NCBI GenBank assembly: GCA_964019335.1
Contig: OZ025696.1
Location: forward strand, 62,001-126,000
Source of the DNA: Diplonema japonicum
Lineage: Eukaryota > Protista > Euglenozoa: Diplonemea
Direction of reading: 5' to 3'
Length of the DNA: 64,000 nucleotides
Shown: in pieces, positions 1-63,508 of the stretch
How positions within the stretch are numbered: position 1 is the stretch's first letter
Layout: each line of letters begins with the position of its first letter
Translations under genes and position numbers: made by a program
The notes under the pieces: generated by a model
Told to the model about the DNA's origin: nothing
Seen by the model: only the letters and a program-made list of their open reading frames with translations
Databases searched by the model: none

Positions 1-1220
1 CATGGCTGCATCCCGAATTCCATGAGGAATGAGGTGAAAGCAATCGCACATCTTCTTTTCTTCTCTTTTTTCTTTTTCTTTTTTTCTGCTTCTTCATAAC
101 AAGGAACAACTTCCGCACCCGCTCACAAAGAAACCACCATACCTCCCTTATTTGTCAAAACCAAATTGCACCAGTTGTCGGGAAAATAGTTTTTTGACTT
201 AAGAGATATGGGTCGTTATAAAAAAGAAAAGAGAAAAAAAAAAAGGAGAAAATACTATATATAATCAGCATTTAGTAAAACATCTTCTGAGGGAGGGTGC
301 GTGGGGGAGAAAGCACAGGCAAGCTATAACCGCGAAAACACTTCGCGAAGGAGGAAAGGGGGGGGGGGGGGGGTCATAAGGGTGCCGTTTTTTTTTCTTT
401 TTTTTCCAGTTTTTTTGCTAAGGGTATTTTAGGCCCTTAAAAAGACTCTAACCACCCCCCAAAAGTGCCCACAAATCGTTCAAACCCCTGTTTCCCGACG
501 GTTATGGACCCCAGAAGGGCCAGTATTGTGTTCTAATTTTTGGGGGCCCCCGTTTGGTACCAAAGGGTCCCAAAGGGGTGCCCCGTATATGTGTATTTCA
601 AACTACCTTAGCAAGCACCGTGAAAAACACAAAAAAAATAGGGGACAGGCGTAAAAAAGAGTGTTTTGTGGTACTGGGGGTGACTGGGGATTACGAAGTG
701 GGTGAACACTTGAAATCAGCAGCGTTTCCATAGGTATCTGAAAAATAAGGAAACGGAAACGTTTCCCCGTTTCTTGCCAGCATAGCCCTGGGGGGGGGGG
801 GGGGGGTAAATAGGGGGATAAAGCCATTTTCTTTCCATATTTTCATATGGGGCCGGAAATTCGCCAGAAATGTTTGTAAAAAAGACATTCTATAAAAGGA
901 CCCACGACTTCGTGAATGTTTGCGTTCCCACAAAAAAATATGGCATTTATTCCCCCGTAGGTAATCCACCCAATACGGATGCGAGAATCAGTAGCGGACC
1001 TGCACCCAGCAATGATTATTGATAAGGGGGGGGGGGGGGGGGGGGGCACCCTCTAAAAATCGTTAAAGGGTGGGGGGGAAAAAAAAAAGAAGAAGAAACA
1101 ACGTTGATTTAACCACCTGGTGGAAAGAAAAAAAAAGAGTCGGCTGCTTGTTGTTTGTCCACCGTTTTCACCTACAGTAGGGGAAACGAACAAGGCTGCC
1201 TCTACTCTAACATTCTTCGC

Positions 1221-4200
1221 TCACGCCAGCATCCCCATAACGCTGAGAGTGTACCCCATATCGAAGGTCACAGCGCGAACCATCGTGTTGTAGGTGGGAG
1301 GCCCACAGATAACGACATGGTTGAACTCAGAAGGTGATTCGAAGGCCTCCTCCATGTGAGCTGCTACAACACTGTTAGCCATGAACGGCTTTATAGAAGA
1401 AGGGAACTCAGCCGACCGAGTAAAAAGGTACTTCAACACAAACCTGTCACCACCGATATCAGAAAGCTCCTCAAACTCCTCATGGTAGGGCACATGGCTG
1501 AAAGTGTTAAAACACACAAACAATACAACTCGGCACCCGTCTCTCAAAGCAGCCCTAGCAATCGATATCAAAGGCGTACATCCGGTCCCCGCACCGCATA
1601 GATACAACTCCTGGTGAATACCCTTTCGGTACTGGTACTCAGACAACAGCAGACCCCTCCCTTCAACGTTGGAGGCAACTGTAAGACTTGATAACAGCGC
1701 GCTGCTTGTTCTGTCATTGTTTAATTTTATCATAAACGTGATCTCGTCGCCCTTGTGGTGAAGGATACTATAAGGCCGGGAGAGCCTGCTGTTGAACCGT
1801 ATGCTGACATGGCTGCCGGGGGGTACGTGCTGTTTTGAGATGTTGTCGGCCTTGAAGGTAAAAGCGTATGTCGATTTGGCGCGTTGTTCCTTCTTGACGA
1901 AGACGATCTTCCTGTACTCGCCCACGACGAGGGCGTCGGTGCTGTTGGCTGCGTCGTCGGTGGCCACGCCGTCCTTTGCGTGTTGGATGATCTTCCCTAT
2001 GCACTGCATCCATGCGTACTTCACCTGAGGGGTGTACTTTTCCTGCAGTGCTTGCATGAACGTGTCGTCGAAGGCCTCGCCCATGATGTCGAACATCTGC
2101 CTTTGTATGCCAAACCGGATGTGTGTCTTCCCCAGCTCGTGCAGGGTGTGTGCTACCTCGTTGGCTTTTGACAGGTCCGTTACTGCCTTGTCAACCGCTG
2201 TCATCACCTGCATCCCGTGGTCTTGCAGACCCTTCTCGTACACATTGCCCTGTCTGCCCCACGGGAACAGCAGCTTGAACTCCGGGTTCCTTTCGAAGAC
2301 GTTTTTAAACAGCAGGACGCCTATGTCGTTCAGCCCTGCCGATCGCAGTTCCTTCCAAGAATCGCGGACTATCATCATGTTGCTCTCGTTTGTGGACAGG
2401 CCGTTCGTCTTAAACACGCGTAGTGTCCTCAGTATCTCCGAAGCATAAGCGCTGTGGCCGTGGCTCCCTTCACCGTGGAAGACGTCGGTGATATCCTTAC
2501 CAAAAAAGGGTCTGAAGCACCCCCTCCCTCCTGGGTGTGAGTGTATGAACGTTGCCACATCGTGTGCCCAGCCCTCCATGTACACGAGCTCGGCTGTTGC
2601 TGATCTTGACGCTGCTGTGGTGCGCTTCCAGGCCTCTTCTAGGTCCTCCTTAGAGGTATCGCTCGTCTTCACCGTCTGCCCTGAGATAAATTCCGTTCGT
2701 GTGAGCTGTTTGCCTTTTGTTCGTACGATCCTCGCTGCGATGCTGTCGCCTGGGTCCCTCTTCACCACCCGTTCCATCAGATCGAGGTTGCCTATCTTTG
2801 CAGCCTCGTAGGCCTCCTTGAACTCCGGGTCGAACCACGGCATACCCTCTCCCTGCATGCCGTACATCAGGTCCCACTTCTCGACACCCTCAAGTCCCTC
2901 CACGAAGAGTTCGCTTACTTCGATGAACGCCTGCCAACGCATGCCCGAGATGGGCCACCTGTCGATAGGGCGCAGCAGCCAGGCAATGGACGCCACATTC
3001 GCCACGATTGAGCCCGGTACCAGGCAGCACACGTCGACCTGCTCAGCGGCCTCAGCAAGGGCGCCAGAGAGCTCCACCGGTGACCCGATGCACGTCACAT
3101 AGTGCCTGTCGTCGCCAGGGTGCGTGATGCCTAGCATGACACCGCCTGTTGCGAGGCCCATGTGCATCTTCATCTTCGTGCCATCGAATTCCTCGTAAAG
3201 CGAGCCTGCGAAGCTGACTGCCTGGATGGCGTGCTGCTGGCAGATCCACACTATTGTGACAGTGGTGCCGACAGTGTTCAGCACAATGCCGAACGTCTTT
3301 CTTGCCAGCGTGCAGATAATGCCCAGAGCGGGTGGCAGCCTGTCGAGGTTGGGGCCCAGCCTGATCTGCGAAACGCTGGCGCTAAAAGAGCGCAACTCAT
3401 CCGAAGCCATGAACCCCTCGACGGCGGCCTTGATGATTGGGTCCGACAGCACCCTGTCGTTGTACAGGTCGCGCAAGAGAGAGCGCAGGAACCGTGGCCG
3501 CGCACCAGAGCCCGGCGTGAGCTGGCTGATGATGTTAGAGCCGCTGCGGGAGCCAGGGGATGCAGACCCCTGTTGGGATCGGGTGTGTCTGGAGGGAGCG
3601 AGAGTAGCACCACGGAGGGATATCTCGGTGGGCACGATGCCTGAGAGCTCGACCTTGCCGACCCCGCGAAGGGTGATCTGACCGAGATGGACCACAGAGG
3701 CATGCACAGTCGTTGTGCCGAGGCATTTCAGGACCGCTTCTGACGCGACGATGCTGCCCCCTGACCCTGCAGACTCGACGCGTGCTGCCGTGTTGACGGT
3801 GTGGCCGTAGTAGTCGCTGCGGTTGGAGACGGGGTCGACCTCCACAGTGACACTGCCCGTGTGCACGCCCATGCGGACACGCATACCTCGGAACACAAGC
3901 TGGTCGTCTTTGTAGATGGCTGTGCACACCGGGTCGTCAAGGATGGCGTGCGGCCAGGGCTGCTTCAGGAGGTCCACTTGTGCGTCGATGCAGAACCGCA
4001 GGGCGTCTGCAGAGTTGCTGAAGGTGAGCATGAAAGCGTCCCCGATGGTCTTCACCTCGTAGCCGCCGTACTGCGAGTACGCCCTTCGGATCACGTTGTT
4101 GTGCAGCCGCATTGCGATCTTCATCTCGTCAGGGTGCTTGCGCCATAAGACAGACGAGCATTCGATATCGGTGAACACAAAGGTAACGACGCCCACAGGG

Positions 4201-4616
4201 GCTGCAACGCTGACAGGCGCGAAGAGTTCTTGGCTGTCTTCCTCATCGATGACACCGTCACAGAAGGATAAGGGATTCGACACCACAGGCACGCAGGGGT
4301 CGGGGAGTGCAACACGGTACCTTTCCTCTGGGGGGTCGGGGGGGCAGGAGAAGGGTGACCTGGGTTGGGAAGACGCGCTGTGATGTCCATTCTCCATGAG
4401 ATCGTCTTCGTGGACTGACAGCTGCTTCACCTCTGTGCCCTTTCTTTGGTGTAGAATTAAGAGCACGAAGATCGCGACGACACTAGTGCACAGCCAGGCC
4501 GTCAATGCAGCCCATGAACCGCCCCCCACCGCTGCAGTCCCTTGCAACGCTGCAAACACCACGGCCCCCGTAACCACTGGAGGTGCAACAGCTTGTAATA
4601 CCCCGTGTCGTATCAT
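1221..4616 (-). CDS. Membrane-anchored class III adenylate cyclase fused to a degenerate second cyclase domain, cytochrome b5, globin and FNR-type FAD/NAD(P)H reductase (1131 aa)
   Basis: N-terminal hydrophobic helices (~4450-4600). Cyclase motifs FTDIE, VKTIGDAFM, RVRMGVHTG, DYYGHTVNTAARVE (~3630-4195). Degenerate cyclase MHMGLATG...IGSPV (~2900-3400). Cyt b5 HPGG...GKDITDVF...GHS (~2420-2590). Globin SW...NPEFKLLF...HG..V...LGKTH...AW (~1970-2395). Reductase RPYS, GAGTGCTP, ICGPP (~1224-1900). Confidence 0.9.
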   Translation of the reverse strand: MIRHGVLQAVAPPVVTGAVVFAALQGTAAVGGGSWAALTAWLCTSVVAIFVLLILHQRKGTEVKQLSVHEDDLMENGHHSASSQPRSPFSCPPDPPEERYRVALPDPCVPVVSNPLSFCDGVIDEEDSQELFAPVSVAAPVGVVTFVFTDIECSSVLWRKHPDEMKIAMRLHNNVIRRAYSQYGGYEVKTIGDAFMLTFSNSADALRFCIDAQVDLLKQPWPHAILDDPVCTAIYKDDQLVFRGMRVRMGVHTGSVTVEVDPVSNRSDYYGHTVNTAARVESAGSGGSIVASEAVLKCLGTTTVHASVVHLGQITLRGVGKVELSGIVPTEISLRGATLAPSRHTRSQQGSASPGSRSGSNIISQLTPGSGARPRFLRSLLRDLYNDRVLSDPIIKAAVEGFMASDELRSFSASVSQIRLGPNLDRLPPALGIICTLARKTFGIVLNTVGTTVTIVWICQQHAIQAVSFAGSLYEEFDGTKMKMHMGLATGGVMLGITHPGDDRHYVTCIGSPVELSGALAEAAEQVDVCCLVPGSIVANVASIAWLLRPIDRWPISGMRWQAFIEVSELFVEGLEGVEKWDLMYGMQGEGMPWFDPEFKEAYEAAKIGNLDLMERVVKRDPGDSIAARIVRTKGKQLTRTEFISGQTVKTSDTSKEDLEEAWKRTTAASRSATAELVYMEGWAHDVATFIHSHPGGRGCFRPFFGKDITDVFHGEGSHGHSAYASEILRTLRVFKTNGLSTNESNMMIVRDSWKELRSAGLNDIGVLLFKNVFERNPEFKLLFPWGRQGNVYEKGLQDHGMQVMTAVDKAVTDLSKANEVAHTLHELGKTHIRFGIQRQMFDIMGEAFDDTFMQALQEKYTPQVKYAWMQCIGKIIQHAKDGVATDDAANSTDALVVGEYRKIVFVKKEQRAKSTYAFTFKADNISKQHVPPGSHVSIRFNSRLSRPYSILHHKGDEITFMIKLNNDRTSSALLSSLTVASNVEGRGLLLSEYQYRKGIHQELYLCGAGTGCTPLISIARAALRDGCRVVLFVCFNTFSHVPYHEEFEELSDIGGDRFVLKYLFTRSAEFPSSIKPFMANSVVAAHMEEAFESPSEFNHVVICGPPTYNTMVRAVTFDMGYTLSVMGMLA

Positions 4617-5343
4617 CCTTTCGTTGTGTAAAATTTGTAAAACCTAGAAAAAGATGAAATATTTTTTCTCTCTCCTTGATAAAAAAAAAAAAAAAAAAAA
4701 AGACGACAAATATAAAAAGGAAAAAAAAAAAAAAGTGTAAAAAAAAAAAAGGTGTAAATGAAAGGCGAGGGAGAGAGAGAAGAAAAAAAAAGAGGAAGAG
4801 GGAGAATAGAAAAAGAAAAAAAAAAAAAAAAAGAACGCAGTTAAGAAGGAGAGAAGTTTATTAATGGGGAAGGGTCGGGATCTTTCTGAAGAAAGGTTTC
4901 CAAGGGGGATCCTGTCGAGATAAAGCGACCTTGCCACACCGGCCAAAATTGACCGGGTGGGAGAAGAGAAAGAAGTTCATTTGCACCCGACAGATGGCAT
5001 GATGTGCCGACTGATTCTTTTTTTTTTTTTTGGACAACGTGAAACCTTTATAGTACATCACATAAGAACCTAAGTAGAAGAAAGAGAGAAAAGAAGAAAC
5101 AATCTGATGTGTGAAACAAGCACATAGTTTGCCTTTGCTTTCTTTTTTTTTTTAAAAATGCAAGGCTTGCAATCTTTTTTTTTTTTTTTGCATCCTTTTA
5201 TAAAATCTTTTTTGTTTTTTTAACCGATGGACACTCGGGTCCGTTGTCATCTTCTTTTCATTTTTTATTTTTTTTTCCCGCCTCCCCTTCCCTTCCCTTC
5301 TTCTGTATTTTTTTTCCTTATTTTTTTTTTTTTTTTTACGTGC

Positions 5344-60799: not shown

Positions 60800-63508
60800 C
60801 TAACAGTACATCGCCTGCAGGCTGGAGGACAGCTTGCTGTCACTCGTCTCATCTTCGCAAGCTTTTCTAATGCTCTGCATGGATATCGACGTGTTGCTAC
60901 TAAGGGCAGTCTCAGCTGCTGCACGGTACATCGCATTCTTAATCTCAGCACCTGTGAGGGGCTGCTCGGCGAGTGTGCCGAAATCAATGGAAGGAGAAAG
61001 AGGTGCGGTAGGGGGTGCAGCCGCTTCCCACAGCCGCTTGCGTGTTTGCTTAGTAGGCAGGGCAAAGGGGATCTCGAACTTCGGACGCAGGGAAGGGCGG
61101 GGCCCTGATGTGGACAAGATGACTAACCCACCAGCACGCTCAGCGTGGAAAAGAAGGTAGGCGGCAAAGGACTTGTAAGATTCCCCTTCCAGCTGCTCGA
61201 CCCCCTCCAGAAGCAGCACCACATTGTTGTCTCTCGCATCTGAAAACAATGTTGCCACGTTCTTTGTGACAGTCCTGTACGCAGACATGATCTCCATGAC
61301 GCTCATCACCTGCATCGGCCTAGCTAGCTCGTAAGCCACCACCTCTGCCGCAAGTGTCTTCCCTGTTCCCTTAGGACCCGCAAACACAACAACAGTGCCC
61401 GTGTTGTCTTTGAACCCCCACTGTGAACGCATGATGCCTCTCGCTTTCTCGTACCCGATCACCTCCTTGATGCCCTTCTCTGTTTCCGGTTCTGTGATGA
61501 GCTGTGCGATGCCCACTGTCGGCGCGATACGTGACTTGGTGATCGCTTGCAACCTGCCTCGGACCTGTTGTTGGCACGCTTCGTCCAAGTCGGCTCCGGA
61601 CACGACAGGGTGCGCCCTGTCACGCGACACCGCTTTTGTGATCGCGTTGACAACAGCGTTCTTGATGAAACCACCGCTGAGCTCGTAGTTGACTGATAGC
61701 TCGCTCCAATTGATGTCCTTGGTGTCCAGCTTGTGGGGGATGTGCGACCTCCAGATCTTCTCTCGGAGCGTGGCATCAGGGTGTGGGAAATCGACGGAGA
61801 GCGTGATGCGGCGAAGGAGCGCCTCATCGAGGGTCGCAGCACGGTTGGTAGCCAATATGAGAAGCCCGTCAAATCGCTCCAGCTCCGTGAGGAGCAAGGT
61901 GACCGCTTTAGAGTTGTCGCGCGTCTCGAGCATCGCATCGCACTCATCGAAGAAAACAAGCGCGTTTTGTATAGACGCTTCACGGAACACCTGCCGCATG
62001 GTCTCCGGTGGACAGTCCCCGAACATGGGCACCGTTACCAGTAAAAGACGCTTCTCGAGCTGTTTCGCAAGAGCGTTGGCCATCATAGTCTTACCTGTCC
62101 CAGGCGGGCCGTGGAACAGAAGGATGACACCTGTCCCGTACCCGCCTGTCGCATCGTGGAAACCGATATCTTGGCGGAACTGCAGGGCGGCCTCGTGGTT
62201 CTCGACTGTGTCGGTGATACTCTTTTTCATCGCTTCAGGAAGAATGACACTGGAGAGGTCGACCTTCGGGGTGTAAAGGTTCGCTGCGTCGATGATATCT
62301 GAGAACTTTGTGTCGAGGCCGACGAAGTAGTCAAGCATGCGGCGGTCGATCTCCACCACACAGTCCATCAGGTCGTTTCCGCCAATCATCCGACGGTCAG
62401 AGACGCTGACTATCCCCGACGTGACCAGAGGACTCTGTTTGTGAAACGATTTTCTGTTCTCCATCTGCGATCTCAAAGACCCTATGCAGTGCACACCGAG
62501 GAGCGTTCCTACATCAAACCCAACTGTTCCCTGCGCGCGGATGGAGCTTCCAATGCGTCGCACGTCTTGAGAAACAATCCCGCTGAGAAGGGTGACAACG
62601 GTCCACAGTTCGAAATCGTTGAAGTTCTTTTGTTTTCTAACGGTCTCCAGGCGGGGCAGGCTTGTTTTCGATGTGAGCGAGAGACGAACCTCACATTTTC
62701 GGAGCGCGGCTCTTTCAACACTTTGTAGTTCTCTCATTTGCGACTCGGGACGCTGCTTTTCAAAACGACGGTCATCGTCGTCTTTCATACCCAGGTTGTA
62801 CAGCTTTAAACGAGCGGCAACAACCTCAAAACGATCTGACAGATAGTCCAAGTCATCTTTGTAAGCGCATAGTGTGTCAGGTTCGTCACGTTCCGGGGTT
62901 CTTTCTGGCTCTTCGGGGGAAGCATCTTCTTCTTCTAATGCTAAGTCAAGAACACCTTCTTCGTTGTCGTCAGCGAGAAGCGGTTGATACCGGCCTGTTT
63001 CCTCTAATACCTCCGACAAGGACGTGTCGGAGATTTTTAGGTATTCTGAGGGTGCGATGCGGACTCCAAGGAATCCTGCCAGAACCTCTCGAGGCATTTT
63101 GAATGTTTGGCTGCGGATTGTGCCGTCAAAACCGTCCTCTACCTCGATCAGCCCTTCCTTCATGTGCCGCCTCTCAGGGGACAGAAAGGTCAGGAGCTGT
63201 CCAGGTGTCATCCCTGATGCCTTGCAAATGTTCAGTGAATCACACCTTGAATCGTAGAGCTTGTTGTTTTCTTCGAGCTGGCAACCCGTGTTGTGCAACA
63301 CTACCCAGTGCATGGCCCGGACCTCTTCTCTCGTCAGGTCTAGTTTTCTGCTTACCAATGTTAGTACTGGTCTCGGTTCCATTTCCTCCCTTTCCATTAG
63401 ACACTCTTCTCTTGCCTTGGCCCGCTCCTCCCAGTCACCTTGTATCCTGTCTTGAAGAACGCCTAGCGCACATTGCAGGTAGTGGTCATCACTCTTGAAA
63501 GGTTGCAT
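60800..63508 (-). CDS. AAA+ ATPase with two AAA modules (902 aa)
   Basis: D1: GPPGTGKT, FFDECD, LATNR...LDEALLRRI. D2: GPKGTGKT with degenerate Walker B (LLEGVE). Start chosen at MQPF after an A-run. Confidence 0.88.
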   Translation of the reverse strand: MQPFKSDDHYLQCALGVLQDRIQGDWEERAKAREECLMEREEMEPRPVLTLVSRKLDLTREEVRAMHWVVLHNTGCQLEENNKLYDSRCDSLNICKASGMTPGQLLTFLSPERRHMKEGLIEVEDGFDGTIRSQTFKMPREVLAGFLGVRIAPSEYLKISDTSLSEVLEETGRYQPLLADDNEEGVLDLALEEEDASPEEPERTPERDEPDTLCAYKDDLDYLSDRFEVVAARLKLYNLGMKDDDDRRFEKQRPESQMRELQSVERAALRKCEVRLSLTSKTSLPRLETVRKQKNFNDFELWTVVTLLSGIVSQDVRRIGSSIRAQGTVGFDVGTLLGVHCIGSLRSQMENRKSFHKQSPLVTSGIVSVSDRRMIGGNDLMDCVVEIDRRMLDYFVGLDTKFSDIIDAANLYTPKVDLSSVILPEAMKKSITDTVENHEAALQFRQDIGFHDATGGYGTGVILLFHGPPGTGKTMMANALAKQLEKRLLLVTVPMFGDCPPETMRQVFREASIQNALVFFDECDAMLETRDNSKAVTLLLTELERFDGLLILATNRAATLDEALLRRITLSVDFPHPDATLREKIWRSHIPHKLDTKDINWSELSVNYELSGGFIKNAVVNAITKAVSRDRAHPVVSGADLDEACQQQVRGRLQAITKSRIAPTVGIAQLITEPETEKGIKEVIGYEKARGIMRSQWGFKDNTGTVVVFAGPKGTGKTLAAEVVAYELARPMQVMSVMEIMSAYRTVTKNVATLFSDARDNNVVLLLEGVEQLEGESYKSFAAYLLFHAERAGGLVILSTSGPRPSLRPKFEIPFALPTKQTRKRLWEAAAPPTAPLSPSIDFGTLAEQPLTGAEIKNAMYRAAAETALSSNTSISMQSIRKACEDETSDSKLSSSLQAMYC

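Follow-up and report, generated by a model that had tools for sequence, protein, structure and literature searches.

A predicted adenylate cyclase fused to cytochrome b5, globin and flavin reductase domains in Diplonema japonicum: a candidate gas or redox sensor

Haem-based sensors require ferrous haem, and how the signalling globins of eukaryotes stay reduced is an open question, also for neuroglobin and cytoglobin. A gene of the diplonemid Diplonema japonicum raises the question of whether a sensor might carry its own reductase. The gene lies in a stretch of 64,000 nucleotides (positions 62,001 to 126,000 of the forward strand of contig OZ025696.1, GenBank assembly GCA_964019335.1), here called the window, whose numbering is used throughout. 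On the minus strand, at 1221..4616, it encodes a protein of 1131 amino acids (aa) in which a putative membrane anchor is followed by a class III cyclase domain (CHD1), a degenerate second cyclase domain (CHD2), a cytochrome b5, a globin and a flavin reductase. This order of cyclase, degenerate cyclase, b5, globin and reductase had been proposed in an initial annotation made from the sequence alone, and it was borne out by Pfam and by fold searches. In the best reading, to which we assign a probability of roughly 0.55, the protein is an adenylate cyclase that is regulated by gas or redox state and has its reductase built in.

The gene and its cyclase domains

The open reading frame (ORF) starts with ATG and runs without interruption for 1131 codons to a TGA stop at 1221-1223, as the initial annotation had described. 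GC content at the three codon positions is 0.57, 0.44 and 0.71, with flanks of about 39% GC. Contigs from four public runs, belonging to two studies, cover approximately 1079-4670 with zero substitutions, indels or joints, and their breaks are confined to low-complexity tracts on both sides of the ORF. Misassembly, a concern raised with the initial annotation, and the joining of two adjacent genes are both ruled out by this agreement; both are also contradicted by other species with the same fusion and by Trinity contigs in which one transcript carries it. The gene is genuine and intact, and belongs to D. japonicum.

The catalytic domain CHD1 spans residues 140-323 (3648..4199, minus strand; Pfam Guanylate_cyc PF00211, 1.6e-28). 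Its closest solved relatives are the cyclase domains of Trypanosoma brucei GRESAG4.3 and GRESAG4.1 (1fx4 and 1fx2, 7e-32), with which it has in common the motifs FTDIE, EVKTIGD, VRMGVHTG and DYYGxTxNxAAR as well as, at the same place, the trypanosome-type insert that separates the two conserved halves of the domain. By alignment with GRESAG4, D150 (in FTDIE) and D193 (in EVKTIGD) would bind the metals, K189 (in EVKTIGD) and D268 (in DYYG) would contact adenine, and N275 and R279 (in VNTAAR) would stabilise the transition state. These residues match those of the active trypanosome cyclases exactly and are kept in all Diplonema copies of the gene. The full catalytic set read earlier from the sequence (metal Asp, Lys/Asp and NxxxR) is thus supported by alignment, and CHD1 is an active-looking class III adenylate cyclase.

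Between residues 341 and 660 no domain is called by Pfam. A degenerate second cyclase had been annotated in this region, and structure prediction had been suggested as a check. The AlphaFold2 model of residues 365-650, comprising CHD2, its preceding helices and the helical subdomain that follows it (2667..3524, minus strand), was confident, with a predicted local distance difference test score (pLDDT) of 90.5 and a predicted template modelling score (pTM) of 0.90, and shows a cyclase fold with a core at about residues 409-570. It was built on an alignment of this region that combined the paralogs with 13 further cyclases of the genome and seven proteins from diplonemids. When this model was searched against the PDB with Foldseek, the best 49 of about 50 matches were all class III cyclases, led by bPAC/OaPAC (6e-11) and followed by CyaB, CyaC, Cya2, Rv1625c and AC9. 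Template modelling (TM) scores to these catalytic domains of ~190 residues were 0.62-0.72 at 12-18% identity. An hhalign comparison of CHD2 with the cyclase domain gave an E-value of 0.096, which is not significant alone, with a sensible register. In that register the metal aspartates are replaced by Arg and Thr, Lys by Asn, Asp by Thr, Asn by Glu, and Arg by Gly or Ala. As modelled, CHD2 is a catalytically dead domain of cyclase fold, in agreement with the earlier claim.

The active site of class III cyclases takes two Asp from one partner and Lys, Asp, Asn and Arg from the other. Since CHD2 lacks every complementary residue, a CHD1:CHD2 pair could not form an active site. CHD1 carries both halves and CHD2 neither, so cyclic AMP (cAMP) synthesis would need the CHD1 of a second chain; we infer that CHD1 homodimerises, and CHD2 would act as a scaffold or regulator. 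In the D. japonicum genome, over 35 further cyclases match the window protein over residues 143-556 or beyond, which indicates that the tandem of an active and a dead cyclase is a general cyclase module here. In diplonemids this 'pseudo-heterodimer-like' module is apparently the usual form of cyclase; it is undescribed in the literature searched and, being common to so many cyclases, is of interest for cyclase regulation. Several cyclases with the tandem module stand in arrays, for example at C21:193-224 kb, C50:411-430 kb and C37:444-457 kb of the assembly. Longer tandems occur in a protein of Namystynia karyoxenos (P0122, 2037 aa) and in one from a metagenome (P0125, 1418 aa), each with four or five cyclase domains per chain that match the hidden Markov model (HMM) of the family's catalytic domain at 1e-24 to 1e-62.

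Ahead of CHD1 lie two hydrophobic segments, at residues 6-24 (4545..4601, minus strand; Kyte-Doolittle 19-mer mean 1.94) and 37-55 (4452..4508, minus strand; mean 2.54), each a putative transmembrane helix. At least one N-terminal hydrophobic 19-mer is present in all of the longer family sequences examined, and two in most, so that a hydrophobic N-terminus recurs in the relatives while its sequence is unconserved. The single transmembrane anchor annotated initially is supported as an anchor, but two helices are more likely than one. On hydropathy alone, the two segments are a putative membrane hairpin with the remainder of the protein in the cytosol.

The redox module

The C-terminal 470 residues appear to constitute a self-contained redox module made up of a b5, a globin and a reductase that binds flavin adenine dinucleotide (FAD) and the reduced nicotinamide nucleotide NAD(P)H. 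The cytochrome b5 (residues 678-733; 2418..2585, minus strand) was called by Pfam above its cut-off (Cyt-b5, 1.6e-6). It aligns with microsomal and mitochondrial b5 and with the b5 of Scs7, and H694 (HPGG) and H721 (GHS) fall at the axial positions; both are invariant across the family. The two His ligands named in the initial annotation are upheld by these PDB alignments.

The globin is of the 3/3 type (residues 745-885; 1962..2384, minus strand; Pfam Globin at 769-878, 2.8e-16). Alignment with neuroglobin (1oj6) and non-symbiotic haemoglobins (nsHb) places F770 at B10, F784 at CD1, H800 at E7, V804 at E11 and H832 at F8, in accordance with the pocket of PheB10, HisE7, ValE11 and HisF8, without TyrB10 and GlnE7, that had been assigned by manual alignment. 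Its best PDB relatives are a class 1 nsHb (7z1u, 1e-12) and neuroglobin (3e-12); flavohaemoglobin follows at 4e-3, and a PDB search with the globin returned no globin-coupled-sensor structure at E<0.01. By HisE7, HisF8 and overall sequence, the globin is closest to the hexacoordinate-type nsHb and neuroglobin. The nearest relatives outside diplonemids (P0128, P0142, P0144) are chains with multiple globins, among them a sea-urchin protein with 12 globins and a protein of the dinoflagellate Prorocentrum with six globins and ankyrin repeats.

The pairing of HisE7 with PheB10, closest to that of hexacoordinate nsHb1 and neuroglobin, would also suit a metabolic redox sensor, in which the two haems serve as electron-transfer centres, with a bis-His globin. 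Their oxidation state, governed by an electron acceptor or by the ratio of NAD(P)H to NAD(P)+, would tune the cyclase, and no gas ligand would be involved. The serial arrangement of two haem domains and a flavin reductase is consistent with this, and hexacoordinate globins with a role in electron transfer are documented (PMC3106018). Hexacoordination is, however, unreadable from sequence, and for redox sensing the b5 alone would suffice, as in older relatives of the protein; the added globin suggests ligand chemistry. A purely redox-tuned cyclase is accordingly given a low probability.

Two domains make up the reductase. The FAD-binding beta-barrel (residues 906-988; 1653..1901, minus strand) contains R947-P-Y-S and S971, and it matches Pfam FAD_binding_6 (PF00970, 4.7e-5), passing the cut-off (24.1 against 21.1 bits) when the C-terminus is scanned alone. 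The NAD(P)H-binding domain (residues 1007-1114; 1275..1598, minus strand; Pfam NAD_binding_1 PF00175, 1.6e-10) contains G-A-G-T-G-C-T-P, with G1010-T-G-C-T-P1015, and C1104-G-P-P. Searches with the C-terminal 242 residues matched NADH-cytochrome b5 reductases only, namely that of Physarum over its full length (2eix, 1.8e-9), yeast Cbr1 and CYB5R3, and flavohaemoglobin was absent from the matches. The reductase, annotated earlier as FNR-type, can now be assigned by the 2eix alignment and by fold to the cytochrome b5 reductase subtype, and a flavin module of this type accords with the b5/b5-reductase scheme proposed earlier.

A model of residues 655-1131 (pLDDT 79.8, pTM 0.67) was most confident in the reductase, with pLDDT of 85-95. 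It superposed on the b5 reductase 2eix with a TM score of 0.82 and a root-mean-square deviation (rmsd) of 2.6 Å; across b5 reductase, the b5 reductase part of nitrate reductase and Ncb5or, TM scores were 0.7-0.8 and rmsd values 2.5-3.5 Å. The best matches to the fold of the whole module were flavohaemoglobins (1gvh, 6.4e-21, ~411 aligned columns), which lead by E-value because globin and reductase both align in order. From its sequence the protein is nonetheless not a flavohaemoglobin, since both the distal pocket and the type of reductase fail to agree. The module reads instead as a fusion of b5 and b5 reductase whose hinge is occupied by a 3/3 globin.

A diplonemid family

The D. japonicum assembly (62.5 Mb in 132 contigs) holds five copies of the full architecture, including that of the window, plus one without the reductase. 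The full-architecture paralogs C104, C37:151k and C103 share 53-57% identity with the window copy. The remaining one (L005, C37:18371-23593, minus strand; gene at C37:19-22k), with 61% identity, is divided into ORFs of 882 and 300 aa, and a stretch of 34 nt bounded by GT and AG (GTATGC...ACAG) lies exactly between its globin codons for RYTPQ and VRYAWM. Without this stretch the reading frame would be continuous and the family motif complete. The pseudogene reading of L005 was accordingly rejected in favour of a probable GT-AG intron of very small size, although introns are otherwise absent from the gene family. The copy without reductase (L006, C6:144207-146507; 33% identity, 915 aa) ends after a divergent globin with LeuB10 and ValE7.

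Matching transcripts exist for two of the paralogs. A Trinity contig (P0002; EukProt EP01064_Diplonema_japonicum_P004910) is 100% identical to paralog L003 across 1163 aa and carries the whole fusion on one transcript contig, and another D. japonicum transcript matches paralog L002 with 99.9% identity. These matches identify the genome as that of D. japonicum. In D. ambulator, three transcripts (P0001, P0003, P0004) have all four Pfam domain types. A protein of Paradiplonema papillatum (P0121, KAJ9472313.1), whose database annotation reads simply 'Adenylate cyclase', aligns across residues 121-1126 at 35% identity, with a globin that Pfam does not call at 0.001. In Sulcionema specki, P0131, whose motifs for flavin and nucleotide have degenerated, is matched by all five family HMMs, the globin weakly (7.8e-6).

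Every Diplonema copy retains the positions for catalysis, haem ligation and the flavin motifs, despite an overall identity of 50-57%. The conserved set comprises the b5 His pair, globin F8, E7, B10 and CD1, and RxYS, GxGxxP and CGxP, in addition to the cyclase residues. A maximum-likelihood tree (IQ-TREE) of thirteen rows, which excluded P0005, P0182 and the C-terminal part of C37a, resolved three D. japonicum/D. ambulator pairs among the Diplonema copies; the window copy stood apart and unplaced.

Simpler forms also exist. P0126 and P0269 consist of cyclase, CHD2 and b5 without a reductase, the C6 copy adds a divergent globin, and the remaining copies have all five domains. This gradation suggests stepwise accretion of domains onto a cyclase-b5 core. 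Outside diplonemids, two word-indexed searches for b5-globin-reductase proteins, one with the 477-aa module and one with its profile, returned only the diplonemid family, searches of a kind that weak relatives may escape. The ESM Atlas yielded only clusters of b5 with reductase or of globin with reductase, all with scores <0.9, and an exhaustive HMMER search placed no non-diplonemid b5-globin-reductase protein among its best 150 matches.

The surroundings of the window gene are those expected in this lineage. Inspection of the sequence revealed a polypyrimidine tract (4645..4840, minus strand) with an AG end about 29 nt before the ATG, which would be the usual euglenozoan context of a trans-splice acceptor, and almost every large ORF in the window is encoded on the same strand; both are typical of euglenozoan polycistrons. 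Neighbouring genes on the chromosome contig encode a mitochondrial carrier and an ankyrin-ART protein. A bacterial or endosymbiont origin was ruled out by the polypyrimidine/AG context, the eukaryotic neighbours and the trypanosome-type cyclase. The assemblies break in the 5′ flank (4671-4843), about 170 nt of almost nothing but T and C, and in the 3′ flank (1001-1134), which holds a run of 25 C and a short segment. Contig depth over this segment was 30-80 times that over the gene in all runs, which marks it as a dispersed repeat.

Proposed function and comparison with known systems

In the preferred interpretation, a gas- or redox-regulated cyclase, NAD(P)H would reduce FAD, and FAD would reduce the globin haem directly, via the adjacent b5, or both. 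The direct route is equally possible because the globin immediately precedes the FAD domain, as in flavohaemoglobin. The globin haem would thereby stay ferrous and could bind O2 or nitric oxide (NO), or turn NO over with O2. The ligand or redox state of the haem module would be relayed by the helical subdomain and CHD2 to CHD1. cAMP would be made by CHD1 domains from two chains paired together, and CHD2 may hold or release CHD1 for this pairing. We infer cofactor binding, the electron route, the gas or redox cue and the coupling via CHD2 to CHD1 dimerisation.

A more ambitious version, which we consider possible but doubtful, is that a gas sensor sufficient in itself arose independently in diplonemids. 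cAMP synthesis would be gated by the flow of electrons along the internal NAD(P)H-FAD-b5-globin chain, for example during NO dioxygenation or re-reduction after autoxidation, with the pseudo-cyclase controlling the pairing of catalytic domains. The signal would then be flux and not ligand occupancy alone. If so, no sensor cyclase with a haem reductase of its own would have been known before, and globin-cyclase signalling would have originated in Euglenozoa a second time, by convergence.

Several observations weigh against a regulated cyclase. In most characterised sensor cyclases the sensor precedes the catalytic domain; here it follows the cyclase on the C-terminal side, behind a second domain. 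For all family members the function is predicted from sequence. In the model of residues 655-1131 the b5 part is of modest confidence (pLDDT 58-70), and superposition of the module on flavohaemoglobin gave an rmsd of ~16 Å at the model's pTM of 0.67. Rigid packing of the flavohaemoglobin kind is not reproduced, which at this pTM is weak evidence; in this low-confidence model the topology resembles flavohaemoglobin and the packing does not.

A further point concerns KAJ9472313.1, whose cyclase has VDIAAT in place of VNTAAR (N to D, R to T) and which keeps the b5 His, globin E7 and F8 and the flavin motifs. The pattern hints that the redox module may work alone in P. papillatum, with a possibly dead cyclase. 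It would agree with the view that these proteins are primarily enzymes, membrane-tethered NO dioxygenases or other NAD(P)H-dependent haem reductases. They would have combined a b5-reductase module with a neuroglobin-like globin by convergence with flavohaemoglobin, and their cyclase would be vestigial or would serve an accessory role in reporting turnover. The order globin, FAD domain, NAD domain is indeed that of flavohaemoglobins, which lead the whole-module fold matches. The distal pocket, however, is without the TyrB10 and GlnE7 of dedicated NO dioxygenases, and the conservation of all cyclase catalytic residues in the Diplonema copies over a long divergence argues that cAMP synthesis has been selected. 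Since the older members (P0126, P0269 and the C6 copy of D. japonicum) have cyclase and b5 without reductase, the cyclase would be the core and the redox parts the add-ons. A primarily enzymatic role is therefore considered unlikely.

The last point concerns expression of the window copy itself. Its exact protein was found neither in a collection of 15 billion proteins nor in the EukProt transcriptome of D. japonicum, and the transcriptome proteins of D. ambulator include none either. No RNA evidence for it was found, as no run holding it is recorded as RNA, and the covering contigs consequently confirm DNA and not expression; the runs, whose kind is not on record, are probably DNA given their very long contigs. 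These absences would be explained if the window copy were silent, in decay or an artefact of assembly, the other paralogs alone being functional. Its branch, the longest of the Diplonema clade and without a D. ambulator partner, and its small motif deviations (Asp for Gly before S970/S971, A1009 in the GGTG motif and the shortest C-terminus) point the same way. Against this stand an open frame of 3393 nt with a third-position GC of 0.71, the retention of all ~25 functional positions at ~55% overall identity, the identical contigs of the four runs across the ORF and flanks with the typical polypyrimidine/AG context. Decay or artefact is regarded as very improbable.

Should the protein be a regulated cyclase, a candidate sensor, a two-step reductase and a second-messenger output would be united on one chain, and because all parts are on that chain a single recombinant protein could test b5/b5-reductase chemistry in sensing. 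Globin-cyclase coupling would have arisen twice in Euglenozoa, in opposite domain orders. Few heterotrophs of the deep and oxygen-poor ocean are as abundant, or as little understood, as diplonemids, and the protein is a candidate for a part in O2, NO or redox taxis or physiology in these organisms.

Full-text literature searches found no description of the five-domain architecture or of diplonemid cyclases and globins, in line with the earlier statement that the architecture was not known from any characterised protein; sequences of the family are already public and unremarked (KAJ9472313.1 and EukProt transcripts). Among the closest known systems are the trypanosomatid oxygen-sensing adenylate cyclases (OACs) such as Leishmania HemAC-Lm (LmjF.28.0090), cytoplasmic proteins with an N-terminal globin and a C-terminal cyclase and with no b5 or reductase among their listed domains (PMC7719234), which agrees with the initial description of HemAC as a globin-coupled cyclase without reductase. 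OACs are O2 sensors, described as a trypanosomatid innovation absent from Bodo (PMC7719234), and have been linked to hypoxia survival (Sen Santara 2013, as cited in PMC7719234). Like them, the diplonemid protein joins a globin to a kinetoplastid-type class III cyclase on one euglenozoan chain with cAMP as the expected output. Its cyclase is instead N-terminal and apparently membrane-anchored, with CHD2, b5, globin and reductase behind it, and its globin, C-terminal to the cyclase in contrast to OACs and globin-coupled sensors, is of the nsHb/neuroglobin type. Because the order is opposite, the type of globin differs and OACs are considered to have arisen within trypanosomatids, the diplonemid fusion would be independent of them.

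The flavohaemoglobins (Hmp/Yhb1, NO dioxygenases) have globin, FAD barrel and NAD(P)H domain in the same order, but a pocket of TyrB10, GlnE7 and LeuE11 in place of PheB10, HisE7 and ValE11, and neither the b5-reductase-type flavin module nor the additional b5 and cyclase. In the raphidophyte nitrate reductase NR2-2/2HbN a haemoglobin occupies hinge 2, with the b5 haem domain on one side and the FAD domain on the other (PMC6128913), the b5-globin-FAD order that had been cited in the initial annotation. There, too, a haemoglobin stands between the b5 and the FAD/NADH part of a b5-reductase-type module; that globin is 2/2 and its partner a molybdenum nitrate reductase, whereas the present globin is 3/3 and its partner a cyclase. 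Ncb5or (CYB5R4) likewise has an N-terminal b5 and a C-terminal b5 reductase, the latter a good fold match (6mv1/6mv2), but its hinge is a CS domain where the diplonemid hinge is a globin, and it has no cyclase. CYB5R4 reduces neuroglobin and cytoglobin (PMC13034514), and the b5/b5-reductase system is documented as a reductant of both globins (PMC7475203, PMC13034514). The trypanosome receptor cyclases, to which GRESAG4.1 and GRESAG4.3 belong, have a large extracellular receptor domain (PMC7719234); the diplonemid protein has a two-helix anchor only, with its accessory domains predicted inside the cell, and haem or flavin domains are undescribed in GRESAG4. Compared with these systems, the protein is best placed as a new variant of the haem-based sensor cyclases, with an architecture that none of the searched papers describes.

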